From NCBI GenBank assembly GCA_004431415.1, contig QPMI01000459.1, positions 62,001-126,000 on the forward strand: a stretch of DNA of 64,000 nt, written 5' to 3'. The DNA is from Cyanophora paradoxa CCMP329 (Eukaryota > Plantae > Glaucophyta). The notes under the pieces were generated by a model that saw nothing but the letters and a program-made list of their open reading frames with translations, was not told the DNA's origin and did no database searches. Made by a program: the position numbers and the translations under genes. Position 1 is the first letter of the stretch; each line of letters opens with the position of its first letter. Shown piece after piece: positions 1,291-58,242 of this stretch.

Positions 1291-2928
1291 GGGGGGGGGG
1301 AGGAGGGCGAAGGGGGGGGAGGAGGGGGGGGGCGCCGGGGGGAAGGATCAGTGCGGTTCCCGGCCGCGGGCCGGTGCTATATATGCATATATATGTCCTA
1401 TATATATATATATATATCGATATCCGGATCGATATCCAAGCTTCGGATTCTCCGTATCGATATCGCCGCCCCGCCGGCCCAGATCTAGACCGGCAGCTGC
1501 AGAACTTGTGCAATCCAGCTTGAGCTAGCTTGCAATTGCAATTGATCATGCATATGCATCCAATTGCAATTCCGAAGTTCATTGCAATAAAAGAAGAAAA
1601 CACATTACTTTTGAAACATACAATGTATATGAAATATTTGGAAACGGGGTAGCTGTAACGTAGGGCCCCCGTTTTCGGTCACTTACAAAATGACGAGTCT
1701 GCTCATCTCCCGATCCAGCTCCGAGCTCTTAACCGAGTGTTAGTGCATGCATGAGAGCCCGGAATTCGTTGTCAGAACTCGGAAAGAGCAGAATGCTGCG
1801 CTGAAAAAAGGACCGAACCCTTTTCTCGACTATCCCTTGCAGCGCCTGATCCCGTGATCGTATAGGAGCCGGACCAAGTGCATAAGAAAGCTCTTGCGAT
1901 GCTCGACAAAGCTTGTCATACATACCAGTGCTCGGGAAGCAGCGCGTGGCGCGCTAGGCCGCATCAAGTACCTGTTGTACCGAACGCGGAAAAAAAGAGC
2001 TCCTGCGAGTTTCGGCCGATATCGTGTTGCAGTACCCGTGCTTCATGATCAAGTACTAGTCGGCGAGCTAGCCGACAGGCTCGCTAGCTGGCCAGCGTAG
2101 CTAGGTGAGCTCCGGCGCCGGCTAGCGGCTTGCTGGACTTGCGCGCGTGGCGTCGCCAGCGCGCTAGCGCTAGCAGTACTAGTGCAGGCGCCGGCGCCGG
2201 CAGTGCGCGCGGGCGCCGACGCGGCGCCGCGGCAGGCAGTGCAGGCGCGGCGCCTGCAGTGCAGGCGCGGCGCTGCGCCGGCCGGCGGCAGTTGGCACTG
2301 CTTGGCAGGCGCGGCGCCGGCGCCCGGCATCATGTGGCATGCCGCATGCGCAGTGCGCACCCGGCCCGATGGCATGGCGTGGCGCCCGCGGGCCGCGGCC
2401 GGCGCGCGCGCGCGCGAGCGCTACGTGCTCGCGATCGACGTTGACTTCATGTGCGAGGCCATGCGCAGGGACCTAAACCTATAGCTAGCGCTAGCTCGAC
2501 GTCGACCTACCCCGTTTCCAACCGGCGGCCGGCCCAGTCAGAGCCCGATCGCGAGCAGAGGCCGCCGCGTGCTAGTCTATGAGATCTTGCAATTGGTATT
2601 ACCATCGAGGCTTGCAATCGCTTCTGCGACTGCCGCTTTCAGGCCTACACGATACTTATACCTTGCCCCTAGGCCTCCCTCCCCACCGCCCCCCTTTCTC
2701 CCTTCATCCCACCCCCGCATTGTATACGTTTCACGATCAGCGCAGACTGTGTGACAAAGAGACGTAGAAATATTAATATAGCCGCTGCGAAATCAGAGCA
2801 GCGCAGCGAAATGGAAGCAGTTATAATTACAATTAGGCGTCCAATGTCGGTTGTTGGTTGTTTGATTGCAATCACAAGGCAGAGAATTACAGCAAAGACT
2901 GTGCCTATCAAGCCTGCAGATGCCAAAC

Positions 2929-3870: not shown

Positions 3871-3912
3871 GGCTACCGTAGCACCGTACTAGTAGTCACT
3901 TAGTCATGATCA

Positions 3913-5601: not shown

Positions 5602-5662
5602 TACATCATCAGCCTACATCCGATCATCATGGATTCATGGCTACATGATCAACTTATAATTA

Positions 5663-16104: not shown

Positions 16105-16935
16105 ACATTGAGCGGCGTCCCGCGGTCGCTTCGAATCAGCGCTCTCCAATGATTGTCGCTCCCGGAGAGAGTCCGCCTGTCGATGTCGACGGATCGTCGG
16201 ACTTGTCTTGCAGTACCAGTCTTGCATGACTCGATGATGAAACAATTATGAAAATGCCCATGCTTGAAATTTAAAATGAATCCGACTCCCGGAGTCCACG
16301 GGGCATTTCTTTCCTCCACTCGGCACTCGCTCTCGGAGTCCGGATATCGATCCCCATGCATGCATGTGCATGAACGCTGACCGCTCAATCGCACCATCGT
16401 GGGCGGTTTGTTAATGTTCGTCGGTTCACATAGTCCGATGTCTCTATTTACATGGGGATTCCTGGGCTTAAGCTTCAAACCTAGGAAGGAGAAAGGGAGA
16501 GACGGGTGCAGAGACGAACTATAATCTAATTATAAACCATGGCCAGTTGCAAAACCATGCGCATTATTTATATAGTATGAGCATGCATGTCAAGCTAGCG
16601 CTCCGGATCCCGACTCAGACTTCGGCGACGTCGACTTTATTTTGGACGGTGAACGCCGCGGCGGCGCCCCGCAGCAGCTGCGCAGGGCGTGAGACCGGGC
16701 GGGGGCGGGGGCGGGGGCGGGGTACGGAAAGTGGGCGGTGCGCTCGGCGGGGGCAGCGGGGGCGGAGCGCCTGGGCGGGAGGCCGGCGCGCGTGTACCTG
16801 TGCCTGCCCTCGCCCGTGCTGGGGCCCTTCTTCTACGCCCAGCCCCTCCGGCCCACCCCCCTCGGCCCAATCGAATGTGCAGTGATGGTGTCACGTTAAA
16901 CGTTGTATTGCAAAAATAGCGGCGGCGCCCTGCAT

Positions 16936-18690: not shown

Positions 18691-21600
18691 GGGGGGGGGG
18701 GGGGGGGGGAAGGGGGGGGAGGAGGGGGGGGCGCCGGGGGGAAGGATCAGTGCGGTTCCCGGCCGCGGGCCGGTGCTATATATGCATATATATGTCCTAT
18801 ATATATATCGATATCCGGATCGATATCCAAGCTTCGGATTCTCCGTATCGATATCGCCGCCCCGCCGGCCCAGATCTAGACCGGCAGCTGCAGAACTTGT
18901 GCAATCCAGCTTGAGCTAGCTTGCAATTGCAATTGATCATGCATATGCATCCAATTGCAATTCCGAAGTTCATTGCAATAAAAGAAGAAAACACATTACT
19001 TTTGAAACATACAATGTATATGAAATATTTGGAAACGGGGTAGCTGTAACGTAGGGCCCCCGTTTTCGGTCACTTACAAAATGACGAGTCTGCTCATCTC
19101 CCGATCCAGCTCCGAGCTCTTAACCGAGTGTTAGTGCATGCATGAGAGCCCGGAATTCGTTGTCAGAACTCGGAAAGAGCAGAATGCTGCGCTGAAAAAG
19201 GACCGAACCCTTTTCTCGACTATCCCTTGCAGCGCCTGATCCCGTGATCGTATAGGAGCCGGACCAAGTGCATAAGAAAGCTCTTGCGATGCTCGACAAA
19301 GCTTGTCATACATACCAGTGCTCGGGAAGCAGCGCGTGGCGCGCTAGGCCGCATCAAGTACCTGTTGTACCGAACGCGGAAAAAAAGAGCTCCTGCGAGT
19401 TTCGGCCGATATCGTGTTGCAGTACCCGTGCTTCATGATCAAGTACTAGTCGGCGAGCTAGCCGACAGGCTCGCTAGCTGGCCAGCGTAGCTAGGTGAGC
19501 TCCGGCGCCGGCTAGCGGCTTGCTGGACTTGCGCGCGTGGCGTCGCCAGCGCGCTAGCGCTAGCAGTACTAGTGCAGGCGCCGGCGCCGGCAGTGCGCGC
19601 GGGCGCCGACGCGGCGCCGCGGCAGGCAGTGCAGGCGCGGCGCCTGCAGTGCAGGCGCGGCGCTGCGCCGGCCGGCGGCAGTTGGCACTGCTTGGCAGGC
19701 GCGGCGCCGGCGCCCGGCATCATGTGGCATGCCGCATGCGCAGTGCGCACCCGGCCCGATGGCATGGCGTGGCGCCCGCGGGCCGCGGCCGGCGCGCGCG
19801 CGCGCGAGCGCTACGTGCTCGCGATCGACGTTGACTTCATGTGCGAGGCCATGCGCAGGGACCTAAACCTATAGCTAGCGCTAGCTCGACGTCGACCTAC
19901 CCCGTTTCCAACCGGCGGCCGGCCCAGTCAGAGCCCGATCGCGAGCAGAGGCCGCCGCGTGCTAGTCTATGAGATCTTGCAATTGGTATTACCATCGAGG
20001 CTTGCAATCGCTTCTGCGACTGCCGCTTTCAGGCCTACACGATACTTTTTTTTCACAAAGCCCATATCAAGGGCGGTGGCGAGTGTATTTGTTCAGTGAC
20101 ATCATCGTACGCACTACCGGTTCGGACTGGGCCGAACTCTGGGTCGGAGCATAACCTGAGGCCGGAACACAGGGATAGGCGCTTTGACGCTACGGCTGAG
20201 CGTTTCTCGTGTAGGGGAAGCGTGGTAGGGGGGTTGCTGTCTTGAGTGTAGGTGCGGGGCGCGCGTTGCCGAGGGGGGCCCAATCTTATATATCGGGTAG
20301 CCGGAGCTTTTTAATAGGGGGGGGGGGGGGGGGGGGCGGCGCGGGCTAGGGTAGCGAGCGCGCCCCCGGATTTGTATTGCCTACACGATACTTATACCTT
20401 GCCCCTAGGCCTCCCTCCCCACCGCCCCCCTTTCTCCCTTCATCCCACCCCCGCATTGTATACGTTTCACGATCAGCGCAGACTGTGTGACAAAGAGACG
20501 TAGAAATATTAATATAGCCGCTGCGAAATCAGAGCAGCGCAGCGAAATGGAAGCAGTTATAATTACAATTAGGCGTCCAATGTCGGTTGTTGGTTGTTTG
20601 ATTGCAATCACAAGGCAGAGAATTACAGCAAAGACTGTGCCTATCAAGCCTGCAGATGCCAAACTCAGCGGCTTGCCATGCCTGACAAGTAACGCGACTG
20701 CGCCTGCATGCGCAGCTGGCGCTATAGCTAGGCGGCCACCTCAGCAGAGACGGATGCCTCGGCGACGATGGCTGAATCCGCCTCCGCCTCCTGTACATGT
20801 GCACGAATTCGAAGCAGTTTCAGCGCTCACAATTATAATTAGGGCGCAAATGAAATCGCACATGTACTCACCAAGAGGAGCTCCTCGTCAAACTCGATTT
20901 CAGCCTGGATGTCTGCGGTCTCAAGAAGACCGTCCCCCGCGTCGCCCTCCAATGCAACGGCCTGCGCCGCGGCCCGTGAGAAATTAAAGCGAGGCGCGAT
21001 CGTATATACGAATGTCGAAGGACAAAAGAAGGAAGATGGACGCGCTTGTCCGTCGTTGTCCAACATCATAAGTTGCCCCATTGGAGTTCGCTGGCAGTGT
21101 CCGGAATAGTCGGATTTGAAGGATCCGTTGGCATGACCGCATCTGCGCATCAAAGCGAAAGGGCTCGCGTCAACAAACGTGGCCATGGAACGGAGCTGGC
21201 AGCCGCGAACTCGAATTCGCGCGATCGAAAAACTTGGGCATTAATCAGACACGCACTGCCACCAGTTGTCGACGTGCCACCTGACTTTCCATGTCTGTTG
21301 ATCAGGGGGCACCGCTGTCCGACTCCAGGTTTTTCCGTCCCATGTCGTCTGGTGGGTCGGGCCCTCCCAGCAGCCGAGATTACCGTCCGGATAGCACGTC
21401 CCGCCCATCGGCTGCGGAGGGGGAAACCAGTTGCCCATCTTCGTGCGCGTGTAGGACGCTTTGAGAGCGGGCTTCTGCTGCCGTCGGGAGTCGAGACTTG
21501 CCGGTGGGAGATGCGGCGATCTGAATTCGAAGTTGTGCACCTGGCACCCGGACCGTGACCCGGTGACCTGCTCGATGTCGAGGTCGCCGTTCTCGAGCGC

Positions 21601-24600: not shown

Positions 24601-27600
24601 TAGTACGCCGTGACGCATCGCACGGACTGCGGCGCCGGCACGGCCCGGCGGTGCGCTGCCGTGCGCATATGCGCATGCCTGATCATGACAATGCGCCTGT
24701 AAACGTAATACGTACCAGTATATCTGACATTGCCTGTAAACGTAATACGTATATCCGTCCTATATATATAGCTATCTCATGATCAGTCTACTAGGCTAGA
24801 CTCTGGATATTGCAGCTGCAGCTGCACTGCGGCAGACATTCCAGTCGCTCTCAACTTGCACGGTTCAGCGTCGCCGTTTCTCGGCGAGCTAGCTATAGCC
24901 GATCGCGTGAACGCACATCATGTCCAGCTCAGGCAGTTCTATCGATATCCCGGTGTTGCAGGCTTGGGCAAATTTCCTCATAAACAATGCGGTCTCGCTC
25001 CCCGAATACCCGAACATCGCAGCGGTTCGTGCCTTGATAGGCCTAGGCCCGTGCCGTGTAGTGCAAATCTAGATCTAAGATGATATTGCGGCGTACGCGC
25101 TAAAACCGTACAGTCCTCAAGGCTTTGCAATGGAATGCCGTGGCTTACGGGGGCGCTTTTGGACAGTTGGTCAAGCCGCTGGGACTTCCCGACCAGGTCG
25201 ATGAATCCGCTGTGCGCGACACTCATTCCCGATAAAGCCATGCCGGGCATGCCGGCCTAAATCACGGCTTGCGATCAGGTAAACGACGTGATGAACAAGG
25301 TGAAGGAGGCATTTGACGCACTTCCCGATGACCAGAAATCGCTCGTCCAGGGCGAGTTTGAGGTGAGTGAACAGCAACCCTCATGCGCGTCAACATACTC
25401 GAGCTCGGCCCGAACTGATTGTACGCGTACATCTGCACGTCGGAGCTCAGGCTGCTCTTGATGCTGTGACCCCTCCGATCGAGACGGGCGTTGAAAACCC
25501 GGAGGAGCTCGTCAACGCGGTTGGCTCGTCGGCTCTTCTCGAGGTTGCAGTCGCGAACTTCATCACAAACCACATAGAAATGCTTGCCGGGCTCCCGAAT
25601 CTCGCCGCGGTGCGCAGAACGCCTTTCTCATGCTCTGAAGTACTAGTCTATAACATAATATAATATGTACCTGAATTTAAAAAGCCGCCTTGAATTCAAA
25701 TTCTCTCTGACTTGCTATGCATATGTATATGGCGGCACGTGCACGCATGCGCAGTTGATAAATTCGGTCACGATTCCGGAAGTCATTGACGCGTCCAACG
25801 TGAGCCGGCTTACCCCGGAGACGGAGCCCTGAAGTTGCCAGCAAGTACTCACGATTATCTATGCAGATCGACGAGGTCGTGAAATCTGTCAGCGAGGCTT
25901 ACCTTTCGCTGTCGGCAGACCAGCAGGCTGAAACGTACAACGAACTGGTGGTCAGCACGCATATGTTCCCCCCTGCCCCTCCCCTTTCTCCGACGCGTCG
26001 CCGACTTAAGCTCACCGCTTTGCAATTGGCCGCGTGCATGTGCAGGCTGCGCTCGCCGCCGCCGCGCCGGCGATTGAGGAGTCCGTGGAACAGAACTCGG
26101 ACCCGATCACGAGCGTCGTGGAGGGGGATGCCTCCTACAGCTATGGCTATGGCTTCGACGACGACCTCGACTATCTGGAGGCCAGCCTCGCGGCCGAGGC
26201 CGACGCCGCGGCCGTCGCCGACGGTGACGCCTTCGATTTCGGCGGCTTCTGAACATTGAGCGGCGTCCCGCGGTCGCTTCGAATCAGCGCTCTCCAATGA
26301 TTGTCGCTCCGGAGAGAGTCCGCCTGTCGATGTCGACGGATCGTCGGACTTGTCTTGCAGTACCAGTCTTGCATGACTCGATGATGAAACAATTATGAAA
26401 ATGCCCATGCTTGAAATTTAAAATGAATCCGACTCCCGGAGTCCACGGGGCATTTCTTTCCTCCACTCGGCACTCGCTCTCGGAGTCCGGATATCGATCC
26501 CCATGCATGCATGTGCATGAACGCTGACCGCTCAATCGCACCATCGTGGGCGGTTTGTTAATGTTCGTCGGTTCACATAGTCCGATGTCTCTATTTACAT
26601 GGGGATTCCTGGGCTTAAGCTTCAAACCTAGGAAGGAGAAAGGGAGAGACGGGTGCAGAGACGAACTATAATCTAATTATAAACCATGGCCAGTTGCAAA
26701 ACCATGCGCATTATTTATATAGTATGAGCATGCATGTCAAGCTAGCGCTCCGGATCCCGACTCAGACTTCGGCGACGTCGACTTTATTTTGGACGGTGAA
26801 CGCCGCGGCGGCGCCCCGCAGCAGCTGCGCAGGGCGTGAGACCGGGCGGGGGCGGGGGCGGGGGCGGGGTACGGAAAGTGGGCGGTGCGCTCGGCGGGGG
26901 CAGCGGGGGCGGAGCGCCTGGGCGGGAGGCCGGCGCGCGTGTACCTGTGCCTGCCCTCGCCCGTGCTGGGGCCCTTCTTCTACGCCCAGCCCCTCCGGCC
27001 CACCCCCCTCGGCCCAATCGAATGTGCAGTGATGGTGTCACGTTAAACGTTGTATTGCAAAAATAGCGGCGGCGCCCTGCATCTAGAGCTCGGTATCCCA
27101 CGGCTCGGCCGCCGCGTCGGCGTCGCCCTCGGCCCACGGGGCGCCGCCCTCGGCCGCGAACTCGCCCCCGCCCCCGCCGGCCGCCGCCATAGGGGGGTCC
27201 ACCACCACCGCCTCGTAGAGGTCGTACCCCTCCTCCGACGACTCCGCCTGCGGCACCTGCCCCGCCCCTTCCCGTCAAGACGAGAGGGGGTACGGGATGA
27301 GTGGGGAGGGGTACGGGCCTCGTTGACGGTGCGGGTGCTGCCCGAGGGGGCCGGCTTCAGCAGGGGAAACATATTGCCCTCCTCGTAGAACGCCTGCATC
27401 CGCTCCAGGAACTGCGGGACGGGGGTAGATCAATGGCATGTAAGCGGTGGGGGGTACGGGACCGGGGCGGACCTCGCCCTTGGAGACCCAGCCGTCCTGG
27501 CTCGGGTCGAACAGGGGTAGTATGCGTGCAGCTCCTCGGTCTGGAGGGGTATGAGATAGGACGCGTGAACGAGGGGGTACGGGAATGGAGAGTGGTACGC

Positions 27601-28230
27601 ACGAACTGGCCCAGGTGCAGCTCGCGCTCGAGAAGCATCGCGATCTGTGGGGGTACACGGTTCGCGCAAACGAGCGGCGGGCCGGGGTACGGGCGCGCAC
27701 CTTGATGAGCTTCATCTGCCCGAGCTTCTCTTTGTCGTAGGCGTCGTACGCGCCCAGGACCTGAGGCGAAGTTAGAGGAACGGGACACGACGAAGAGGAG
27801 GAGGAGCGGGGGCGGGGGCGGGGGGGCGGGGTGGGCCTTGTCCTGGAAGGCCTTGACGGTGATCTCGTCGCCCTTGCCGTACGCCTCGTTCGGGTCCTCG
27901 ATCGACGCCCGCATCTCCGCCTGGGGTACGTGTCAACAAGAAGGCGGGGAAGAAGAAGAAGGGGGGCGGACCCAGGGGTCGGCGGCGTTCTCCATGACGA
28001 GCTTCACGATCTCGGCGTGGATGATGTGGCCGGTGCCGTTGAAGTCGAGGGCGCGGGCGACCTCCTCGAACTTGAGGTTGCCGTCCCGGTTCGTGTCGAT
28101 GAGCGCCAGGAACGCCGGCGAGACCTGCGCCAAGAAGAAGCTCAGGCGGGCACAGATCTATCTATCTATCTCTTGCAGAGACAGACAGGCGGAAAAAGAG
28201 CACCTTCTCGAGGACGGGGAATGCGGCCTT
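18085..28230. repeat. Tandem segmental duplication, copy B (includes a 331-bp insertion)
   Basis: Near-identical to copy A; contains the empty sites at 22555-22562 and 24091-24106. Confidence 0.95.
20048..20378 (-). mobile_element. 331-bp poly(A) retroposon with structured 3' module
   Basis: 15-bp TSD GCCTACACGATACTT at 20033-20047 and 20379-20393; T-run 20046-20053; empty site at 2643-2657; 3' module shared with 53746-53853. Confidence 0.92.
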
Positions 28231-31096
28231 GAGTTCGGCCATGGACGCGAATCCGTCCTTCGAGCGGTCGATCACTTCCATCACCTGCGCGGGGTACAGT
28301 CTCAGACGAGGGCGGCGCGGCCAAGGGCGAAGCCTCTTTCCTAGGGCCTGGCGGGGCGGGGCGGGGCGAAACGCAAGGCATGCCTTGTAGGCGGCGACGT
28401 CGGCGGCGTTCTCGAAGACGCGGGCGATCTCCGACGCCGACGTTGACTTGTCGCGATTGTAGTCCACCTGCGCGGGGAGGAAGGGGGAGGAACGGGGTCA
28501 GGTGACCATGGGCGGGTAGGTGGGTGGGGCGGGGACGGCGGGAGAGGGGAGGGGGAAGGGAGGAGGGGGTGCCCGTCGCGTCCCAACGGCGCCTCGCCCA
28601 CCCCTCGGCTAACAGGGGCCCTTCCCCCGTCACAGACTCCGGCTAATGGCTATCGGAGCTACAGCGGCTTAAGAGCCAGCGAGCCGGCCGGCCAGCCAGC
28701 GAGCCGGCCGGCCAGCCAGCGAGCCGGCCGGCCAGCCAGCTAGCGGAACGAAGCGGGGCCAAAAGCGAGGCGGAGGGGCCAGAGCTTCGCTCCGGGCCCG
28801 GCCAAAGCCTTGAACCGACCTTGTCGAGGACCTCGGCCTCGTAGGGGGAGGAGGGGGGGGAGGGGGGGGAGGGGACGCCCGCCGCACCCCAACGGCGCCC
28901 AGCCAAACGTCTAAAGCTACTCTATCTCCAGGCCAGGCCCCAGGCCCCAGGCCCCAGGCCCAGGCCCCAGGCTCCAGGACGGACCTTGTCGAGGACCTCG
29001 GCCTCGTCGTAGGCGTTGTCGTCGTTGGGGTCGAGCACGTCCGCGATGATCCGCGACTTGCACGCCCGCGCCACCTGGGGGAGAAGGGGCGGGGGGCGGG
29101 GGGTGGGGGGTCAGCGCGGGTGGCGTCTCCTACCCAAGCCTCTCCTACGCCCCGCCCCACCCCGCCGGCGCGGGGCTACTACGGAGGAGGGGGCGGGCGG
29201 ACCTCGGGGAAGGCGACGGCACCGTCGTGGTTGGCGTCCAGGTACGCCATCAGCTGCCCGGGCTCCAGCTGCGAACGAAGCGCGGCGCGGGTGGGGCGGG
29301 TGAGGAGGCGAGGCCAAGGCAGGGGCGACGGGGGGCTTCTTCGTCCTCGAGACGGGGCAGCAGGCAGATAGATAGATAGGTAGATAGATAGATAGATAGA
29401 TAGATAAGTCACGACGGGGCGGGCAGATAAACAGAGGGACAGGTAGGTAGACAGGCTGATAGGTGGATGGACGGGGCGAGTGGAGGGACGGGCGGGGCCG
29501 CGGCGGAGCTAGCCGGACCTGGCCGCGGAGGATGGCGAGCTCCTCGGGGCGGGCCTTGAGGGCCATCTCGCGGGAGACCACCAGCACCTCCTCCGGCGTC
29601 ACAACCTGGGGGGCGGGGGGGGGGGGGGGGGGGGGGGGGGGGGCGTCAGCGGAGGGAAGGGGGGGAGGTTTGCGATCCGACCGAGTCTAGCCCGCGCCGT
29701 CTTCTCATCTATCTGATCTATCTAAGAGTTCTGAGATCTATCATCGGATCTGCCCGCCTCTCGTCTGCACCTGGTCGCGGGAGACGTCCGCGAGGAGTCT
29801 TATGGGTTATGATCTATCTATTTAAGAGTTCTGAGACCCATCTAAGAGCTCTAACCTGGTCGCGGGAGATGTCGGCGAGGCGGGCGAGCTCGCCGAGGGT
29901 AACCTCGCCGTCCCCGCCCGCGTCCGCCAGGCCCGCGAAGTCCCCGCCCAGCACCGCCGCAACCTGAAGGGGGGCGCGCGCATCGGATGGGAGGGGCGGG
30001 CGGGGGGCTTGGAGGGGCCACAAGAGGCTGGATTTCGCATTAGATTACTGGGTCTTATGGACGGTTGTGTTTATGTTAGATAAGAAGTCGGCTGGGCGAA
30101 CGGGGCCGGACCTCGCCGGTGGCGAGGCGGCCGTCCCCGTCTGAGTCCAGCGAGGCCATGATCTCCCCGGGCGAGTACGCCCCGTCCCCGTCCCCGTCCC
30201 GCATAGGGCCCTCGACCGCCGCCGCGCTCACGGGCGCCGCCACGGGCTTCGGCGGCGGCGTCGCGTCCGGCCGCCCCTGCTCTGGCTCCGGGTCCGGCGC
30301 GACGACCCGCGCCGGCGGCGCCGCCGTCTGGCTCTGCTGCACGCTCTGCTGCACGCGGGTGGGCATGCCGGGGGCCGTGGAGACGAGCGGGGCGACGAGC
30401 TCCATCCCGGGCGGGAGGTCCGGCGGCAGGTCGAGGTCCGCGAACGGCAGGTCGTTGTAGATCGAGGCGCCCTCCGTCTGGAGGCTCACCGTCATCTGAG
30501 CCCGCCCGGATCAAATTCGGATCAAATTCGATTTCAAATTCGGATCAAATTCGGATCAAATTCGGACCTGGGCCGGGGCCTCGAAGACGACGTCCTTGGG
30601 CATGCGGATGCTCTGCACGCGGCCGGCCTCCTCGACCGGCGTCCGCGTGGGCGCGTCCTCGATCTTGGCGGCGCTCGCCGTCTCCGGGTTGAGGTGCCGC
30701 GTGAAGACGGCCGGCTTGGCCAGCGGGTCGAAGATGTAGGCGTCGCCCGGGTCCGCGGGGTCCGCCGGCGGCTCCGAGAAGCTGCCCTTCACGACCGCCT
30801 CGTCGATGCGCTCGCCGCCGGGCGCCGTATAGGCGGAGGGCGTCGCCTTGGGCGGCGCCAGGGGCGAGGGAGAGGGCGACGGCGTCCCGGCCGGCGCGTT
30901 CGTCACGATCTCCTGGAACCAGTCGGCGGGGAGCGCCCAGCTCATGTCCGCGATCGGCAGCGCCGTCGCGAAGGAGAGCTCCTGGAGCTCCTGCACGGCA
31001 GAGTCCAGCATCTGCGGCGACGGCGCGGTTTGAACGCGGGCGAGCGGGCGCGAAGGAGCGCGGCGCGCTCCGCCGCCGCCTGCGGACCTTCATCAT
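27083..31096 (-). CDS. Multi-EF-hand calcium-binding protein with Pro-rich N-terminal region and C-terminal DTEL (~16 exons; 5' end uncertain)
   Basis: EF loops DGDGDGAYSPGE, DSDGDGRLATGE, DANHDGAVAFPE, DPNDDNAYDEAE, DRSKDGFASMAE, DTNRDGNLKFEE, DPSQDGWVSKGE; stop at 27083-27085. Confidence 0.8.
28673..28740. repeat. Intronic 20-bp tandem repeat (GAGCCGGCCGGCCAGCCAGC), ~3 units
   Basis: Direct reading. Confidence 0.85.
29366..29406. repeat. Intronic (GATA)n microsatellite
   Basis: Direct reading. Confidence 0.9.
30507..30565. repeat. Intronic 11-bp tandem repeat CGGATCAAATT x5
   Basis: Fills most of the ~70-bp intron. Confidence 0.85.
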
Positions 31097-42200: not shown

Positions 42201-45200
42201 TTATTCGCATGCATATTATCATATGCATAATGTTAACGTTGAGTGTGAAGTATCCCGCCCCGCAGTGATCGATTTAATGAGCGGACGCACGACGTATTCC
42301 GCAGAGAGCGGACTTTGGAGCTGCTGTCGTACTTGTACATGTCAGCTGCCTCAACGGTTGCGCTCGAGTACATCGACGTCGATTGCCCCGCAGATGCCGA
42401 TACCTGCATTCTCCTCTCCGCCTGCAGGCAACGGCGTTAGCTATAGGTTATGGGCCGGGGGCCCGGGCTTTTAAGCTCGAGAAAATGTTATCCTCAGCAG
42501 TACGCATTGGTCTTTGAAGCTCGCGCGAATGTTATCCCCGGCAGTGCGGATTGAGCTTATCTATATAATCATATAGAGTTATAAATATATACCTCAAGCG
42601 AAGCCTCAAGCGACTGAACTCGCTCCCTGAGAGCGGCCAGCTCCGACCCCGACGTTGATCCGGTCTAGCCAAGGAACAAAGATAATTAGCACAACGTTGG
42701 AATTATTAGGTAGAGTTTGATGACCTGTCGAGCAGCTTCCTCCGCCGCCGCACAGGCCTTGTCTGCGGCCTTCTTGGCGCCCTCCGCCTCGTGCTGCGTT
42801 TTTAGGGCGTACTCGAGCGACTCCTCCGCTTGTCTCGCTCTTGAACTTGATTCGCGCAACTGCATATGCATGATCACTAGTATACGCAGCTGCAGCTGCA
42901 GATGCTAGATATTTTAAAGTTGCAAGATTATGCATACGGCTGCACGGAGGATCTTGAGCTCCAATATTTGCTCATTTTGATCAGCCTCCACGTCGGCTAG
43001 GCGTGTTCGTTTTGCAGTTTTCGAAGAATTTTCGGCTGCAGCGGCCAGCTTGCGATCGAACTCCGAATTCTGGTTGCCAAACGACAGATTCGATGCGAGT
43101 TGATTCGAAAACCGTGCTCGATTATATTTAACGGTAAACGATCACCTGCGGGGCGGACGCCTGGTCCTGGAGGGAGCTGCGATGAAGAAGGGAAAGCTCC
43201 TCCATGCCCACCAAGGGGCCCGTCGGCCCTTGCGCCGCAATCCGCCCGTCCTAAAGCACACGCTCAAGGGTCGTAATTATAAGCGGAAGGGGGCGAAAGG
43301 CAGAATTGAAGGGCAGACTGAGTAGATCCGGATTTGGTACGGGGCAGGCAGGAAGCGCTGAAAGCCTGCGATGAGCTCATCGTGGCCGGCAAAGAGTCTC
43401 ACAACGCTCAGAATAACGTCCTCAGTGGTCAGCCTGCGCATTGCATTCGAACGCATGCACATAGAAATATAATGAGGCTTCATTAAGCGCACCCGCCGTC
43501 CTTCCAACGCTTGATCGTGTCGAGAAAGCCAGAGTAGCTGTGAGGGGCCTTGGCCCGAGCTTGGGCGAGGTAGTCCAACGCGTCCGATCGCGAGTCTGTG
43601 GTATCGATATTCTGATCCAGACGCTTGAATTCGCGCGAGTTTGTGCAACGGGAAATAGTGCTTGCAATTGGATCCATCTGCTCGAGCTCGGGTTCACGAA
43701 TCTCCGGATCCTGCTGTATCCAAAATCAGAACGGAAAAGCTCGAGATCTGCAGCGCTAGCGGCAGCGTAATCATAACGCACGTGGTGCTCACGATCTTCG
43801 GTCTTTTCCTTGCTTGCCTGGCCATTAAGCCCGGCCTCCAGATCTTTTGCGCCGCCGGACTTGGCACGATCAGCCGAAATCGCCTTGCCATTCTTCTGCA
43901 GGCCGATAGTTAAGGAATGCCGAACACAGGGACACAGCTTCCGTAACATCTAGATCTCACGAGCGCGCATCGAAGCCTTCGGGGGGCGCGTAGGAGGCCC
44001 ACCTCGCGCTCGTAGCGCGCCTTGTCCGCCGCCGCCTTCGCCTCGTACGGCTGCAAAGATCCATCGTGTCACAACAAGATAATGATCAACCGACTTGAAA
44101 TATGCGATCAGGCGCCTCGCATGCGCACCGCCTTCTCTTCGGCTGTCATCTCCCTCCACTTCTCGCCCTGTGAATATGAATATATAATCAGGCAGTCGGA
44201 AGGGCCGTCATCGACGCGCTGTACGTAAACGTATACGTATACGCGAAACGAAAATGATGCTCACGCAAATCTTCGCGAGGTCGGTGCTGCTGACGCTCAT
44301 ATTGTTCTGCTTGAGTTTCTCGCGGCTCTCTGGCAACGAGCAGACGCCGTGACACGCATGCTTCAACGGTTGCAAATCGAGGAACAGCGAGGACAGAAAG
44401 TCGGACCAGTAAAGAAAATGGCGTAGGAGTTCGAAGGGCGCTTTGGGGCTCCGGGATCCCTCGGGGCAGGCTTGCCCCCCTTGGGCTTCTCCTCCTCTTC
44501 GCCGCCCTCGCCCTTGCGCATGCTCGCCTTTGCCTCCTTCGCGCCGCCGGCCTCGCCGTCCTTCGCAGAAATCGCCTTGCCGCTCTTCTGCTTTAAGAGT
44601 ATTTATAAGAATCAGAAAGGACGATTCGTTCGCGAGCATTCATCTCGCATTTTCAGGCGCGCCTCGAAGCCCTCGGGGGGCGCGTAGGAGGCCACCTCGC
44701 GCTCGTAGCGCGCCTTGTCCGCCGCCGCCTTCGCCTCGTACGGCTGCGAAGATCCATCGTGTCACAACAAGATAATGATCAACCGACTTGAAATATGCGA
44801 TCAGGCGCCTCGCATGCGCACCGCCTTCTCTTCGGCTGTCATCTCCCTCCACTTCTCGCCCTGTGGATATCAATATATGATTAATCAGGCAGTCGGAAGG
44901 GCCGTCATCGACGCGCTGTACGTATACATAAACGTATACGTATACGCGAAGCGAAAATGATGCTCACGCAAATCTTCGCGAGGTCGGTGCTGCTGACGCT
45001 CATGTTGTTCTGCTTGAGTTTCTCGCGGCTCTCTGGCAACGAGCAGACGCCGTGACACGCATGCTTCAACGGTTGCAAATCGAGGAACAGCGAGGACAGA
45101 AAGTCGGACCAGTAAAGAAAATGGCGTAGGAGTTCGAAGGGCGCTTTGGGGCTCCGGGATCCCTCGGGGCAGGCTTGCCCCCCTTGGGCTTCTCCTCCTC

Positions 45201-48200
45201 TTCGCCGCCCTCGCCCTTGCGCATGCTCGCCTTTGCCTCCTTCGCGCCGCCGGCCTCGCCGTCCTTCGCAGAAATCGCCTCGCCGCTCTTCTGCTTTAAG
45301 AGTATTTATAAGAATCAGAAAGGACGATTCGTTCGCGAGCATTCATGATCATCTCGCATTTTCAGGCGCGCCTCGAAGCCCTCGGGGGGCGCGTAGGAGG
45401 CCACCTCGCGCTCGTAGCGCGCCTTGTCCGCCGCCGCCTTCGCCTCGTACGGCTGCGCATGCGAAGATCCATCGCGTCAGTTCACAATGTAATTATATAA
45501 TTTTTCGACCACAATTTGCGCACTGCTTTTTCCTCGGATGACATGGCTACCCACTTTGCGCCCTGAAAATAGAAAAAGGTTCGCAGTCGCCAGGTCTAGA
45601 TTCGGACAGGATGCAATAACATTAAAAAAAAGAGCGTACCGTGAGCTTCCCGAGATCTCGGAAGCTCGCACCGGGGTTCTCCGCCTTGATCGAATCGCGC
45701 TTGTCTGTACGCGGCAGGCGGGCGTCAGTTTGAAAGCTTGCAATTGATCATGAGTAGTGATGAAAACTTCCCGAAATAAGGAGCTCGCGATCGAGCGCAC
45801 CGGTCGAAAAGAAAGCGTAGGCGGTCGAGGGCCGCTTGGGCGCGTTCGGGTCCTTCGCCGCGCATGCGCTTTTCCCGCCCTTCGCCTTGCTGGCACTGTC
45901 GTTCGCGTCCGTCGTCTGCTCGCCTGTCAGCATCGGCGTCGCGAGAGATCTAAGCCAGCATTTCAGATCACACGTGCACCTTCGATTTCTCCTTCGGCCC
46001 CTTCGGCTTCTTCTCCTTCGCGGCCGCCGGCTGCGCGGCGTGCAGCTGCGCACGCATTAATATCGGGTGTTGCTTTCGAGGCGATCACAGAAGTTTGATT
46101 AAAATCTCGAGCCTTCGGAGCGGGGGCGGATCCGGAGGGCGAGGGCTTGGCGATCTGGAAAAGGGCGTTGTCCGCAGGGGCTGCTGTAGGGGCCGAGTTC
46201 ACAGCTGGGCTCAAGGCTGGCGCAGCCCGCGCAGCAAGTCCGGAGGCCGAGGAGGCCGGCGGCGGCGGTTCGATAGCGACGTCGACTGAGGAAGCGCCGG
46301 CGCCTTCAGCCTTCGAATTTGCCATCACCGACTCCGAGGCCTGCGCAATATTTAATGATATAAAACGCATCGCCTGTTCGCGCGTGACTTACGCGACCTA
46401 AAGCTACCTTTGGGTTGGGCTTCGCTGGCATGGATGAGCTTGCAATTGCGGCATCCTGTCGCGAAGGTGAATAGATGAAGTTTAATTTCGACTTCGCTAA
46501 ATCAAAGGCAGCTGCAGGAAAGAAGCGATTCACAGGAGAAGAAGCGCTCTGACGAGCGCGCGCACCGGGGCAATATCGAGCTTTCGCGGTATTTGCGGCG
46601 GAGGCTTCGCGATGAGCAACGGCTTGACTTTCTGCTTCGTGCTCAGGTCCGCGCACGTGACGCTCAGGCTCGGAAGCGCCGAGCTTGCAATTGAGGCTGC
46701 CGATGTACTCGCCGATCGAGAGCTGGCTCTCGCATCGATATCGATAGCAGCGGCGTGCTTTCCCGAGGCGACGGCGCCGGCCGCGGCCGCCTGCGGGGCC
46801 TTCTGAGCCTCGTCGCGATCGCCCTCTGCTGCGAAACTCTGCAAAAAAAAGCGCGGGAACAGATAAGGTGCCGCCGGATCCGGAAAGCCTCAGCCGCGCG
46901 CGAAGAAAGTGATTTCTATGACTCGAGATCGGTGCCGTCTAGCCCCTAGGCCTTGGAAGGCACGAATGGACGCGATCGAATTTTGATTTTGAACGCTGCA
47001 TGCAGCTATATAGCTAGCGCTGTATATAAAAAGGCGCACGTGCACCTTCGCATTTGTGGGGCCCGCGGGTGCCGCGATGGGCGTCTGCGCGCGAAAGAAC
47101 GCCGCAAACTGTCAGGAGCAACAGAATCCCAGCTGCAGGAAACACTAGTAAAACGGGGTCCGAACTGATCTAATTACGATCTAATTGCGACCTAATATAT
47201 TAGATCACAGTTCAGTCGGCCCGGCCCGGCGATCTAATACGGATCGTATTGCAATTAGATCGGAGTTAGATCGGGGCTTGCGCCGCCTATAGCTGATAGC
47301 TGAGCCCTATAGCCTTATAGACCTATAGCCCTTAGAGCCCCTAGAGGCCCTTTTAGCCTTTTAGGTCGAGCCCGCCGCGGCGCCCGGCCCCGCGCGCCGC
47401 CCCGGCCTCCCCGCCCTAAGCTCCCCTCGAGCGCCCCTCGAGCTCATGATCATGAACACACGCTCTTGATAATTAAACAAATTACGTATGTATGCACGTG
47501 ACCCGAGCGCGTGGGCGAGAAGGCCGTTCTCAATGTGGCCACGAGGGCGTCCCTGGCGTCCCTAGGCGCCAGATCAATCCCTGGAATGCGGGGAAGCTAA
47601 AATACGCTTGTATGCGCATTGAAGAGACATTTAAGATTATGTATAAAGCTTAAGAGCAGCGCCGTGGGCTGGAGGGCGCGCACCAGAAAAGAGCCGAGCT
47701 TCGCTGTAGCTTCGCTTGGACAGCTCGCCTTCGAAATCTGGACAAGCAGAACTCGAGATCAGATGCAGAATGGTGGCGATACGAAAGAGATGGTGGCGAG
47801 CTCGGCTACGTGGAGGTCGCGTAACTGGAGGAGCGGCGGAGGAGCCGCTCCCGCGCGGCAGTTTCGCGAGCACCTGAGGCGAGAATCACGGCGATGCGCA
47901 GAGATTAGGGCGGGGGCGCACGGGTGCGGCCGCGCGGCCATGAAACTGCGGCCGCGCGGCCGCGCTCGGGCGCGGCGTGGGCACGGGCGCGGCTCGCATG
48001 CAGCAGGCTCGACAGGAGAGCAGGATCTCGCATGCTTGGCGGGCCTGGCGGCGGCGCGGGCGACTTGCGGCGCAAGCTCAGCAATACGAAGTTTGATAAG
48101 GATGCGCATTGGCCGCCGCCGCCATATCTTTCTCCCTCCAGCTCTCCTTCCCTTCCCCTCTCTGCTTCCCTGCTGCCTAGATAGCTGTATAATTATAATG

Positions 48201-52005: not shown

Positions 52006-52084
52006 ATTTTGAGAGACTACGTACGGTGGGGCGAATTTAAACCCCCCGCGGTCCCCCCACGGGCCGTATACGTAGGTGGTGATT
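52006..52084 (-). mobile_element. Decayed relative of the 4826-4908 retroposon
   Basis: TTTTGAGAGACTAC[GTAC]GGTGGGGCGAA[TTTAAA]CCCCCCG...TAGGTGGTGAT aligns with 4830-4872. Confidence 0.75.
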
Positions 52085-52086
52085 CC

Positions 52087-53284
52087 ATGGCCATGAACCG
52101 CGACCTGCGCGCCCGCTTCCCCAACGCGCAAGGCTGCCTCGCCGCCGTTGAAGTCGACCTCGGCAACCCGAACCGCAAGCTCAAAGTACGCCTTATGTAA
52201 ACTGTGCAATTGAGCGAAGTCTCAAAACGCGAGCCCGGGCCGGGACGTAGGTCCGCATCTGTCAGGACCTCTCGGTTGCGAGCCGTCAGGCGGTGTACGC
52301 CGGCCTCACCCCGGAGCAGCAAGCCGAGGGCCTCTCCTACCGCATCTTCTGCGGCATCCAGGGCGTCTACACGGACGACGCGCTCACCGCCATGTGCCAG
52401 GTCAGCCCCGGGCCCACCCGGGCCCCAGTGGGGGCCCATAAAAGGAACTTAAAAGATAACGCCACCCCGCGCGCGAGCGCTGGACTAAACCTCTGCCCCC
52501 GCAGGCGGTTTGGCTCGAGCCCGAGCTCTTCGACGGCAAGATCAAGGTCGTGAACCTCACGGCCCTGCAGCCCCACAAGTACAAGCGTGACGGCGACAAC
52601 ATCGCCATCGTCGGCAAGGAAGTGAAGCCCGTGCTCGACGCGGACGACTCCGAGGACGAGGACCAGGAGGTCCGTACCCCCCCTCGCCCCCGAGGGACCC
52701 TGTACCCCCCCTGACAGAAGGCCCACCCGACAGTCGCTCTACCCCGACTCGCTGGCCCTGGCGGCCTCCGAGACCAGCGCGAAGGTCGTCACGGAGCACC
52801 GCATCCACTACCCCAACGGGGTGGGCGGCCGCGCCTCGTACCGCCCCGGCCACTCCACCACGGCCCGCCGGCTCAACCGCCTCAGCGCCCTCAATGAGGG
52901 CAAGACTAACGAGGAGGCAGCCAAGATCGCGGCGGAGATCGCCGCCAAGTCTCGCAAGCGCGCGGCCGCGCACTTCGGGCCCGACGCGCGCAAGAAGAAT
53001 AAGGGCGGCGCCGCTGCCCCCGCCGCCCCGGTTGCCCCCGCGCCCCACCCCGCCGCCGCCGCCGCCGCGGCGGCCGCCGCCGCCGCCCCGCGCCGATCGC
53101 CGCCCCCGCGCCCGCCCCGGGCCCGGCCCCGCCCCGGCCCGCCCCGGCCAACATCACGCTCGCCAACTACCAGGCCACCCAGAAGCTCCTCACCGAGCTC
53201 ACGGCGGCCATCGGCGGCCCCGCCGCCGTAGAGGCCTACCTCGCCGGCCGCCGCGCCGCGGCGGCGGACAACGCAGCGGCGTAG
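52087..53284 (+). CDS. Unknown protein encoded by the retroposon (4 exons; possibly 5'-truncated)
   Basis: Exons 52087-52185, 52290-52400, 52505-52669 and 52734-~53284, joined in frame by phase-0 GT-AG introns. A probable indel lies in the GC tract before ANITLANYQATQKLLTEL...*; without it the stop is at 53231. Confidence 0.7.
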
Positions 53285-53745
53285 ACTCTCTAGGACCCTC
53301 CTAGAGTTGGGGCCTCCGGCCACCCCCTTTCTCTCTTTCTTTTCTCTTAGTCAATCTCTCTTTCCAGAGCGGCCATGAGGCCTCGCTACACCTAAGGGCG
53401 CGACACTTAGCTGTCATGTATGCTTGATGAAGCAATGCCAAGGCGCGCGCCCAAGACCCCCGACCAAGCCACCCCCGCCACTCGCCCCGCATCTTAGCTC
53501 CGGCCCCGCAGGGCCCCCACCTAGCCCGTGCTCACCCCTCTCTTGCGTACCTAGCCCCATCCCGGCCACCCGGGACACCCGCCCCGCGCCCCGCATGCCG
53601 AAAGATAGGGGGATGTGCAACCGCCCTAGGCCTGTACTACCCCCCCACCCCACCCCACCCCCCCACCCCCCCTAACAGACTACGCCCCGCCGACGCGAGC
53701 CCACGACGGACACCCCGCCAAGCTCCCCCCCCCCCCCCAACACTG

Positions 53746-53897
53746 AACGCTTCTAGTTAGCGTCGAAGCGCCTATCCCTGTGTGCCGGCCACAGGTTATG
53801 AGCTGACCCAGAGTTCGGCCTAGTCCGAACCGGTAGTGCATACGATGAAGTCAGTGGTCTGAGAATAAAACAAACGCCCAAGAATTGGGCTATCCTG
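53746..53897 (+). ncRNA. Conserved structured 3' RNA module of the retroposon family (minus-strand homolog 20054-20204)
   Basis: Stems ACGCT/AGCGT, CCTGTG/CACAGG, GTTCGG/CCGAAC and a terminal GCCC/GGGC, retained in both copies. Confidence 0.6.
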
Positions 53898-54012
53898 AAA
53901 AAAAACGTAGGTGGTGATTTATAGGGTAGCTATAGGTACTATAAAACCGTATACGTATTCGTACTATACTATGATATATACCGTAATAAACAATATCATG
54001 ACAGGCAAATTT

Positions 54013-57000
54013 ATTTTCAGGCTTGTAGGGCGGTAAATTGGGGGGATACCGCGGTCAGCACCGCCCGATCGCGAAGAAGGAGCGGAAGCAGACAGGTAAG
54101 CGGAACAACAAGACGACGTGGAGGCTGAGGCGAAACAGGACGATGCGAAAGGGCAGAACTACGACACGAGCGCGAGGAGGACACAGAAGACGGATCAGGC
54201 GGATCAAGAGCAGGCAAAAGGACAGTCAAAGGAATCACTAAAGCCGGCCGTGGTCGAGGCGGGCAGTCGAACTGCAAACGACGGCGAACGACAGGCCGAA
54301 GACGAGGACTAGCGCTGTAATTAATTCTAGCTGTAGCATCGACACTACGATCAGGATCCGAACCAGACCGAAGTAAACTACAAGACAGACTCTGAGAGAA
54401 CGCCGGCGCGGCGGGATATATATACGACGGGCGAAGCACAGCGGCAGACGACAAAGCCAGAGGCTGCGGCTCCGTACCAGAACAAGCTTACGGGACGGAG
54501 GGCCTGGTCCAGCAAACCGACGGAGCCTCGGAGGATCCAGAAGGAGACGCAGGCTCGGCAAGCCGGTGACGGGTGCGACCACGAGTCCGGGAAGAGATCG
54601 GGGAAGAGGTCCCGGAGCTAAGGGCCCGAAAGCAGAGGCAGAAGGCAAGCCCGGCGAGAAATCAGACCCGGAACCGGAACCCAGCGAACGGCGACGACGT
54701 CGACGAAGAGGCCCCCGGGGGGGCATGGCCAATTGCAAGACGGGGGATCCGGAGCTACCGAGCAAAGAAAGCACTGACAACCGGCGTCGAGCACGGCGGA
54801 GGAAGTACCTCGCGGTCGCGATCGTAGACAGCGGCAGACGGAGAGCTCGAGTCCAGGGTCGAGCTAGAAACCCGACGACGGGAACGCGACGGAGGCCTAG
54901 GCCTACGGGAAGGAAGAGGCGAGGTACCTCAATTGTCTACCTCAATAGTATGTAAAAGCAATGTTTTAATGTTGAATAAACGTTGCCCTGGCGGGCCTGG
55001 CCTAGGAGGCTAGGCCTGAATGAGGCTGAATCAATTATCAATCAGTGCCGCGTCAACATCGAAGTTTCGCGCTGTGACTTCAGTGACGCAGCTGCGACTC
55101 CTGCGAGCGCCGAGCGCTCGAGCCTCGACCGGGGTGACGCCGCCGTCACGCCAGGGACCCGACTCGGCGGGGATCGGAGTACTGCTGGCCCTATATTACT
55201 AGTACTGTAGAACTAGTTAATTTAGTACAGGAAAATAATTAGTACTTCGCGAAAACTGCCACTTTAGCAGCTAGTAAATCTTAGTAGGTCAGTCTGCGCA
55301 GGGCTTTTGTATGGCGGAGACGGGACTACCCCTACAAATTCTCGCCTTTCGCAGGCGGGAAATATTTAGTAGATCGCCCAACTTGGCGCGGGCCAAAAAC
55401 TTTTAGTACTATAAATATGCAGCCCACTAAATATTTCTTTAGCTTGCAATTGGCCGGGAATTTGGCCCTCAAGTAGGGCACTGGCGGGCGGCCAACTTGG
55501 CAAGCCAGCTAGCTAGCCGGCCAATTTGGGCGGGGGGCGCCTGCAGCTGCAGGCTGCAGCGCTAGCTGGGCTAGCTACAGGCGACCAAAATCCCGGCTAG
55601 TGCTTTTCGACGGCTGGCAAGCCAACTGCCCATGGCCAAGCTGAAAGCCAGACCCAAAGCCCCCCTTTTTCTTCCCGTGGAAGGGGTACTCAAAGAGGCA
55701 GATTTGATAAAGCGCTAGCTCAATCTTGAATATTAATGTAAAGCTCGAGCTTAATGTACGGCTTAAAAAGCCGTCCTGCAGTACTCGAGACCGGGCCAGC
55801 TAGTCTAGCTGGGCGGCCTGGCCATGCATATGGGCCCTGGGTCGGGGCCCTGGGGGCCTGGCCCACCTGGGGCCAGAGCCGCCAGTGCCCGCCACTGGCC
55901 CGCCAGACCCCTACCGCCGGGCCGCGCCGGCTACCGTAGACGACTTAAATACCGCGCCACATATTACCGCGTTCTAAAATTTCGGCGCCGGTATGCGCTT
56001 TACCGCGCTACCAAATTACCGCGTTCCATCGTCTTCGAAAATGTATTATTTGTTAGCAAAGGGGGTAATTTTGAGCGCGGTAATTTGGCAGCGCGGTATT
56101 TAAGTCAGCGCGGTATATAAGTCGTCTACGGTACCGGTACTAAGGTACGGCGGTACCCTCAAAGTTCCAACAGTTACCTTGTGGACCCGGGAGCTGAGGG
56201 AATTTGGGGGGGGGGGAACTGGGGGATACTATGATACCGGCTCGTTGCCAAAGTCGTTGGTCACGGTTGGTGGCAACTTGCAATTAAGTTGCAACTTGCC
56301 AAAAGTTGCGATTGCCGGCAAGTTGCGGCGGCAACTTGCCGGCAACGTCCCCAAATTGTATCGGCATGAAATTTTCAGGCTTGTAGGGCGGTAAATTGGG
56401 GGGATACCGCGGTCAGCACCGCCCGATCGCGAAGAAGGAGCGGAAGCAGACAGGTAAGCGGAACAACAAGACGACGTGGAGGCTGAGGCGAAACAGGACG
56501 ATGCGAAAGGGCAGAACTACGACACGAGCGCGAGGAGGACACAGAAGACGGATCAGGCGGATCAAGAGCAGGCAAAAGGACAGTCAAAGGAATCACTAAA
56601 GCCGGCCGTGGTCGAGGCGGGCAGTCGAACTGCAAACGACGGCGAACGACAGGCCGAAGACGAGGACTAGCGCTGTAATTAATTCTAGCTGTAGCATCGA
56701 CACTACGATCAGGATCCGAACCAGACCGAAGTAAACTACAAGACAGACTCTGAGAGAACGCCGGCGCCGGCGGGATATATATACGACGGGCGAAGCACAG
56801 CGGCAGACGACAAAGCCAGAGGCTGCGGCTCCGTACCAGAACAAGCTTACGGGACGGAGGGCCTGGTCCAGCAAACCGACGGAGCCTCGGAGGGATCCAG
56901 AAGGAGACGCAGGCTCGGCAAGCCGGTGACGGGTGCGACCACGAGTCCGGGAAGAGATCGGGGAAGAGGTCCCGGAGCTAAGGGCCCGAAAGCAGAGGCA

Positions 57001-58242
57001 GAAGGCAAGCCCGGCGAGAAATCAGACCCGGAACCGGAACCCAGCGAACGGCGACGACGTCGACGAAGAGGCCCCCGGGGGGGCATGGCCAATTGCAAGA
57101 CGGGGGATCCGGAGCTACCGAGCAAAGAAAGCACTGACAACCGGCGTCGAGCACGGCGGAGGAAGTACCTCGCGGTCGCGATCGTAGACAGCGGCAGACG
57201 GAGAGCTCGAGTCCAGGGTCGAGCTAGAAACCCGACGACGGGAACGCGACGGAGGCCTAGGCCTACGGGAAGGAAGAGGCGAGGTACCTCAATTGTCTAC
57301 CTCAATAGTATGTAAAAGCAATGTTTTAATGTTGAATAAACGTTGCCCTGGCGGGCCTGGCCTAGGAGGCTAGGCCTGAATGAGGCTGAATCAATTATCA
57401 ATCAGTGCCGCGTCAACATCGAAGTTTCGCGCTGTGACTTCAGTGACGCAGCTGCGACTCCTGCGAGCGCCGAGCGCTCGAGCCTCGACCGGGGTGACGC
57501 CGCCGTCACGCCAGGGACCCGACTCGGCGGGGATCGGAGTACTGCTGGCCCTATATTACTAGTACTGTAGAACTAGTTAATTTAGTACAGGAAAATAATT
57601 AGTACTTCGCGAAAACTGCCACTTTAGCAGCTAGTAAATCTTAGTAGGTCAGTCTGCGCAGGGCTTTTGTATGGCGGAGACGGGACTACCCCTACAAATT
57701 CTCGCCTTTCGCAGGCGGGAAATATTTAGTAGATCGCCCAACTTGGCGCGGGCCAAAAACTTTTAGTACTATAAATATGCAGCCCACTAAATATTTCTTT
57801 AGCTTGCAATTGGCCGGGAATTTGGCCCTCAAGTAGGGCACTGGCGGGCGGCCAACTTGGCAAGCCAGCTAGCTAGCCGGCCAATTTGGGCGGGGGGCGC
57901 CTGCAGCTGCAGGCTGCAGCGCTAGCTGGGCTAGCTACAGGCGACCAAAATCCCGGCTAGTGCTTTTCGACGGCTGGCAAGCCAACTGCCCATGGCCAAG
58001 CTGAAAGCCAGACCCAAAGCCCCCCTTTTTCTTCCCGTGGAAGGGGTACTCAAAGAGGCAGATTTGATAAAGCGCTAGCTCAATCTTGAATATTAATGTA
58101 AAGCTCGAGCTTAATGTACGGCTTAAAAAGCCGTCCTGCAGTACTCGAGACCGGGCCAGCTAGTCTAGCTGGGCGGCCTGGCCATGCATATGGGCCCTGG
58201 GTCGGGGCCCTGGGGGCCTGGCCCACCTGGGGCCAGAGCCGC
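54013..58242. repeat. Tandem duplication, 2358-bp period (54013-55882 = 56371-58242), second unit cut off by an LTR element
   Basis: Near-identical sequence; part of it is related to 38955-39090 on the opposite strand. Confidence 0.93.
55934..56131. mobile_element. Tc1/mariner-type MITE
   Basis: TIRs CCGTAGACGACTTAAATACCGCGC / GCGCGGTATATAAGTCGTCTACGG; TA TSDs. Confidence 0.88.

Follow-up and report, generated by a model that had tools for sequence, protein, structure and literature searches.

Two retroposed units in one stretch of the genome of the glaucophyte Cyanophora paradoxa (64,000 nt in all, hereafter the window) end in nearly the same sequence, which raises the question of what this shared 3' module does and how it came to stand at the end of both. 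A reading made from the letters alone (the sequence-only reading) had proposed a portable RT-recognition or RNA-processing element, possibly a new class of structured RNA. We examined the two copies, their carriers and their insertion sites. The features referred to below are the following, TSD denoting the duplication that flanks an insertion.

52085..53905, plus strand: copy A, a 1.8-kb retroposed unit (C-rich 3' UTR, tail module, A8), delimited by its TSD pair, by tblastn with P0005 and by gene model P0001
52071..52084, plus strand: left TSD of copy A, 14 bp, CGTAGGTGGTGATT, with GTATA before it at 52066-52070
53906..53919, plus strand: right TSD of copy A, 14 bp
53746..53853, plus strand: conserved 108-nt box of copy A; weak homology may reach ~10 nt further upstream (CCCC-N-ACAC)
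53854..53875, plus strand: variable spacer of copy A, 22 nt, with 8/22 positions identical to copy B and equal length
53876..53890, plus strand: terminal hairpin of copy A, GCCC-N7-GGGC, pair probability 0.93-1.0
53896..53905, plus strand: 3' terminus of copy A, TG + A8
20046..20378, minus strand: copy B, a 333-bp retroposed unit (C-rich 174-nt 5' part, tail module, A8), delimited by its TSD pair and a paralogous empty site
20097..20204, minus strand: conserved 108-nt box of copy B
20060..20074, minus strand: terminal hairpin of copy B, GCCC-N7-GGGC, pair probability 0.66-0.97
20379..20392, minus strand: upstream TSD of copy B, AGTATCGTGTAGGC, 13-15 bp by assignment of an A, with GTATA before it at 20397-20393
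20033..20046, minus strand: downstream TSD of copy B, whose initial A coincides with the final A of the tail
2643..2657, minus strand: empty site corresponding to copy B (state before insertion), in the tandem-duplication unit that lacks copy B

The box shared by two 3' ends

Aligned without gaps, the plus-strand sequence of 53746-53853 and the reverse complement of 20097-20204 agree at 93 of 108 positions. The exact count of mismatches is thus 15, the number that had been estimated by hand, and they fall at module positions 7-12, 20, 39, 46, 56, 57, 59, 76, 95 and 104, with the six at 7-12 contiguous. Inside the window, blastn recovers the pair at 89.9% over 99 nt (E 3e-33), and a 30-nt core pattern of the box occurs at two places only, in copies A and B, against a chance expectation of 0. 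Both stems that had been called invariant, ACGCT/AGCGT and GTTCGG/CCGAAC, are indeed identical in the two copies, and the one change noted in CCTGTG/CACAGG, at module position 46, replaces A by T, so that copy B loses a U-A pair there.

The likeness is confined to the 3' end. When the copies are compared in the same register, identity is 86% in the box, 36% in the spacer and 25-43% upstream, the last figure being the level expected from composition for C-rich sequence. The spacer 3' of the box is 22 nt long in both copies, and the 20-nt stretch that follows it is identical at 14 of 20 positions and contains the GCCC-N7-GGGC hairpin. As had been observed, this hairpin differs in its loop (3/7 identical) and not in its stems (8/8); after a further 4-5 nt, both units end in TG + A8, at equal distance from the box. 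The upstream bodies align only at C-runs, in agreement with the earlier statement that they do not align, and the local score of 39 was equalled by 14 of 500 dinucleotide shuffles. Between the 174 nt upstream of the copy-B box and the 460-nt UTR of copy A, we found no significant alignment. A poly-C tract does lie upstream of both boxes, but its distance is not the same, being 5 nt in A and ~115 nt in B.

With filters off, a search of the window by a covariance model of copies A and B detected no diverged third copy. Scans for exact patterns likewise yielded no further copies in contigs of viruses, of metagenomes (two patterns) or of prokaryotic genomes.

The carriers, their insertion sites and the LINE of the window

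The locus of copy A is covered by gene model P0001 (tig00020734_g13600). Copy A begins in the middle of a coding sequence and is flanked by a perfect 14-bp duplication. With P0005, a paralogous 642-aa gene model on another contig, tblastn places residues 294-641 on 52084-53345 in four blocks, while residues 1-293 have no counterpart in the window; the coding blocks (52085-53345) are separated by three to four GT-AG intervals. Because the first 293 residues are absent and GT...AG intervals lie between the blocks, we read copy A, from its sequence, as a 5'-truncated, intron-keeping retroposed copy of a Cyanophora-specific gene family. The P0005 gene model extends into a 3' UTR that starts as that of copy A does, and the UTR therefore belongs to the repeated unit.

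This protein family comprises at least 12 C. paradoxa gene models at 31-98% identity, with subfamilies within the species diverging to 31-64%. An exhaustive search of 1.84 billion representatives returned no relatives outside C. paradoxa, its single match to a bacterial repeat protein being spurious. The copy-A exons were searched piece by piece, not as a joined spliced sequence, and neither these pieces nor P0005 matched an entry in Pfam, PDB or the ESM Atlas. In a word search, the last coding block of copy A matched EukProt entries of EP00741 Cyanophora paradoxa only, and the N-terminus of P0005 had no match; a protein-guided scan of viral contigs for the family was also negative. The AlphaFold2 model of the copy-A protein (pLDDT 36) was unusable.

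Two more familiar identities for copy A were considered and rejected. A processed pseudogene or retrogene made by a relaxed L1 does not fit, given that the GT-AG intervals are retained and both tails are A8 and not of arbitrary length. Nor does a HAL1-like derivative with ORF1 only, since there is no Pfam or PDB match and the only paralogues are from C. paradoxa. Elsewhere in the genome, in gene model P0007 (tig00020572_g11553, outside the window), the N-terminal part of an RT domain runs straight into the final exon of the copy-A family, probably because a truncated copy of that family is nested in a LINE and the gene predictor bridged the two. The neighbouring gene models P0009 and P0010 are apparently two pieces of a single diverged copy of full length.

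Copy B lies in a tandem duplication of ~10.9 kb, in which 1-6466 and 13944-18192 correspond to 17389-28337. The two duplication units are 99.6-99.9% identical over most of their length and 97.5% identical in the first 2.6 kb, and they differ by three insertions, namely a LINE, an 84-bp unit and copy B. Since the other, near-identical duplicate keeps the empty site intact at 2643-2657, copy B is a proven, very recent insertion with a 13-15-bp duplication. We rejected the identity of a classical SINE for it: it has no tRNA, 5S or 7SL head, ARAGORN finds no tRNA, and Rfam gives only chance hairpins of G-runs with C-runs. Among the latter are the miRNA-like Rfam matches at 20300-20440, in which a G-run of the host flank pairs by chance with the C-run (C20) of copy B; these are not genes. 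Both carriers, then, are bona fide target-primed insertions, with TSDs in A and B, an empty site for B, A8 ends in both and a 5' truncation in A.

The duplication took three separate retroposon insertions after it arose, and retroposition in the C. paradoxa genome has therefore been recent and frequent. The 84-bp retroposed unit (4825-4908, minus strand) is present in one duplication copy only, with its empty site at 22555-22562 and a TSD of 7-8 bp, (A)TCAAACT. Its 3' end consists of a strong UUCG-loop hairpin, CTACGGGGGG-TTCG-CCCCACCGTAG, then TCTCTC and A9, and it shows no similarity to the tail module or to the window LINE. The window as a whole is nuclear DNA of ~60% G+C with AT-rich intergenic stretches. 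Starting 108 bp downstream of copy A, two direct repeats of 1.87 kb (54013-55882 and 56371-58242) stand 488 bp apart at 99.9% identity; as in the LINE, the strand is rich in A; we could recognise no long ORF in them, and they may represent the terminal repeats of a further retroelement. An overlapping tandem repeat of ~700-800 bp (43963-44748 and 44657-45457) has 96.9% identity.

The insertion sites of copies A and B are strikingly alike. Both insertions are directly preceded by GTATA, and the first bases of the TSD extend the match to GTATA-N-GTA, a nine-position motif found 16 times when both strands of the window are counted, a frequency of 1.25e-4 per position. That the two should have a GTATA|NGTA target in common by coincidence is unlikely, even when two or three choices of register are allowed. 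The TSD is 14 bp in both if the ambiguous A of copy B is assigned to the duplication. Because the GTATA|NGTA target, the 14-bp TSDs and the A8 tails are common to A and B, the evidence points to one endonuclease/reverse transcriptase as the agent of both insertions.

This enzyme does not appear to come from the LINE that the window contains. The LINE occupies 6467-13943 on the plus strand, its ends being defined by an empty site at 24091-24110, and has one ORF of 2129 aa with RVT_1 and RNase H domains (Pfam). It starts with TGCAAAAAG and ends with GATTGTTTG, without an A tail, and it has a TSD of 16-20 bp and the target GGCA|ATTTAAC. The module had been described as unlike the 3' end of this LINE; the box in fact shows no similarity to any part of 6467-13943 on either strand. 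Lacking the box and differing in TSD, target and tail end, the window LINE was rejected as the partner, and the 64-kb window, in which it is the sole LINE, holds no RT-encoding element with the box tail.

Folding of the module as an RNA

The module had been pictured as a set of helices around a multibranch junction. At gathering thresholds, Rfam finds nothing in the whole window, and at E<=10 no ribozyme family (hammerhead, HDV, twister or others) matches the module or copy B; the remark that no hammerhead or HDV core is visible was thus correct. The only hit of the module at E<=10, a resemblance to a C/D-box snoRNA, scores 13.5 bits where the gathering score is 45 and was set aside as a chance match. 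A tRNA-like origin of the GTTCGG hairpin was also rejected, ARAGORN finding no tRNA and Rfam no match.

Folding energies are at the level of dinucleotide shuffles (z 0.0 to -0.54), and the single-sequence folds differ between copies A and B and from the consensus. The RNAalifold consensus does return the helices proposed earlier, including that of GCGC-UAUC with GGUAGUGC. Because all of its 29 pairs are invariant, they carry no information: 0 of the 29 covary between these two sequences, and the lack of substitutions in paired columns is built into the RNAalifold method. When the same substitution blocks were placed at random and the sequences refolded, 20-33% of the pseudo-pairs reached a consensus energy at least as good (p 0.2-0.33).

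Only two helices hold up across the Boltzmann ensembles of A and B alike: GUUCGG/CCGAAC, at 0.48-0.96, and GCCC/GGGC at the terminus, at 0.66-1.0. The P2 helix is strong in A and absent in B. Although RNAalifold recovers the multibranch junction, P1 and the junction-closing helices have an ensemble probability of <=0.15 in both copies, so that the junction found no support. A competing hairpin at module positions 15-26, in which the only substitution lies in the loop, fits the substitutions equally well. The structural claim is neither supported nor excluded by two sequences, and the proposal of a new structured RNA class or RNA-processing element draws no support from Rfam, from the folding energies, from covariation or from the randomised substitutions.

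A probable LINE-type tail, its alternatives and its relatives

How, then, is the shared 3' end best explained? We think it rather probable that the tail is a cis-acting tag of one LINE-type RT, used by two retroposon lineages as in SINE/LINE pairs. The tail would span ~160 nt, with a box of 108-120 nt, a spacer fixed at 22 nt and a short hairpin of G+C, followed by TG and 7-8 A. One LINE-type endonuclease/reverse transcriptase would pick its template by this tail, to which the RT would presumably bind, and target-primed reverse transcription would begin at the defined 3' end that the tail sets. The two lineages so served would have different bodies, one of them lineage-specific, protein-coding and with introns, and the other a 333-bp unit. 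An autonomous LINE with the same tail would be expected elsewhere in the C. paradoxa genome.

The pattern of divergence is consistent with a tail of this kind. Because copy B is younger than the near-identical duplication and the TSD of copy A is perfect, the 14% by which the boxes differ is mostly a distance between two active source lineages and not a product of decay. Box divergence at the level of lineages, beside neighbours that cannot be aligned, is therefore a sign of constraint. By analogy, the 3'-proximal hairpins that are robust in both copies would correspond to those of stringent-type LINE tails. If the responsible RT were relaxed and recognised poly(A), the box would not be needed for recognition. 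Of the earlier proposal, the part that concerned a portable RT-recognition element is supported by the context, given target-primed carriers, 3'-limited homology and the same tail, TSD and target; such a tail is of a long-known type and not a new class.

The likeness might instead be a matter of common descent, with both units being 5'-truncated copies of diverged subfamilies of one non-LTR family (possibly autonomous or giant, with the copy-A protein as its last gene) and the box being the best-conserved part of the 3' UTR. Copy A is itself 5'-truncated, the divergence of its subfamilies down to 31-64% identity indicates that diverged lineages exist, and both 3' regions are C-rich with C-runs. 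The phrase "two otherwise unrelated retroposons" in the sequence-only reading accordingly holds for bodies that do not align, but "unrelated" is unproven, as both could be truncated copies of diverged relatives. We nevertheless judge common descent unlikely: the 174 nt of copy B do not align significantly with the 460-nt copy-A UTR, neither unit holds an RT remnant or other coding remnant, and no full-length source elements are seen within the window. This alternative concerns origin only, and the function of the box could still be RT recognition. Template switching, in which an RT starts on the tail of its own LINE and jumps to unrelated RNAs, so that the shared tail is a by-product of each insertion, would account for homology that breaks off sharply where the box begins on its 5' side, beside C-runs. 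It is an improbable explanation, since P0005 reads into the start of the copy-A UTR, making the UTR part of the repeated unit, and since boxes that differ at 15 sites, and in the spacer too, do not derive from one donor RNA.

Two other explanations deserve very little credence. One holds that the transcript end is set by a new RNA, structured or self-processing, in the form of a ribozyme or of a signal for 3'-end processing. That would suit an identical TG A8 end at a fixed distance from the box and stems that are kept as loops change; against it stand the absence of any ribozyme match in Rfam at E<=10, a z of ~0, multibranch helices of low probability, a null test at p 0.2-0.33 and the competing hairpin at module positions 15-26. 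Just as hard to credit is a regulatory element in the 3' UTR of a host gene family (for mRNA stability or localisation), carried passively into retrocopies and unrelated to retroposition. It has in its favour that the protein family of copy A is conserved, lineage-specific and encoded with introns, but copy B has the box without a trace of the copy-A gene, the tail is the exact end of both units, which have the target motif in common, and ordinary mRNA retrocopies would be spliced. Beyond the LINE-type tag that we favour lies a more elaborate arrangement, which we regard as quite doubtful: a bipartite structured signal of box and hairpin, through which a family of protein-coding retroposons that lack an enzyme but keep introns, together with small non-coding units, would hijack the sequence-preferring GTATA|NGTA LINE enzyme, the family's lineage-specific protein perhaps binding the tail in cis. 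If true, this non-autonomous retroposon system would have no counterpart among those described.

We conclude that the feature is a further example, in a glaucophyte, of the known LINE-dependent shared 3' tail, and that no new RNA class is supported. To our knowledge, glaucophyte transposons are almost undescribed, and a literature search found no published description of Cyanophora SINE/LINE pairs. The tail sequence, the 14-bp TSD and the GTATA|NGTA target offer a first handle on the RNAs mobilised by the active LINE machinery of C. paradoxa, and the tail is a ready probe for collecting dependent elements and finding the partner LINE. The target preference and the intron-keeping, protein-coding carrier are noteworthy in themselves. 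The tail also bears on whether stringent 3' recognition is ancestral in Archaeplastida, a question raised by Ohshima (PMC3747384).

The ORF2 protein of stringent-type LINEs binds to a 3' stem-loop in the RNA that encodes it, and this tail is what SINEs borrow (PMC4176376; PMC3747384). The eel UnaSINE1/UnaL2 pair and zebrafish ZfL2, from the work of Okada and Ohshima, have such a common 3' tail with stringent-type recognition (PMC3747384; PMC4176376). As in these pairs, the Cyanophora units have different bodies that share only the 3' ~80-150 nt, a stem-loop near the 3' end, a defined terminus and TSDs; unlike them, the Cyanophora tail ends in an A-run and not in a TGTAA-type repeat, the carriers are without a tRNA, 5S or 7SL head, and there are no compensatory changes between the two copies.

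Closer in host are the Chlamydomonas elements SINEX-3_CR and L1-1_CR, which share ~80 nt ending in poly(A) (Ohshima 2012, reviewed in PMC3747384), and the L1/SINE pairs of plants, in which a 3' stem-loop is followed by poly(A) (reviewed in PMC3747384). Like these, the Cyanophora units belong to an algal or plant host and share a 3' stretch that runs into poly(A), with a hairpin shortly before the A-run. They differ from these pairs in that the host is a glaucophyte and the shared region is longer and bipartite, with box, variable spacer and hairpin.

The protein-coding carrier has a partial parallel of its own. HAL1 (half-L1), like other LINE derivatives of its kind, is non-autonomous and protein-coding, and its RT is supplied in trans. 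Copy A is likewise an enzyme-less retroposed unit that is still protein-coding and needs an RT in trans, but its protein is without detectable similarity to LINE ORF1, Pfam or PDB, and spliceosomal introns are kept.

An end in an A-run does not imply relaxed recognition, as exemplified by SART1 of the silkworm (R1 clade), in which the 3' UTR is essential despite a poly(A) end (PMC3747384). SART1 is telomere-specific and autonomous and has no sequence relation to the Cyanophora tail; what the two have in common is an A-run end compatible with specific recognition of the 3' UTR, together with a sequence-preferring choice of target.
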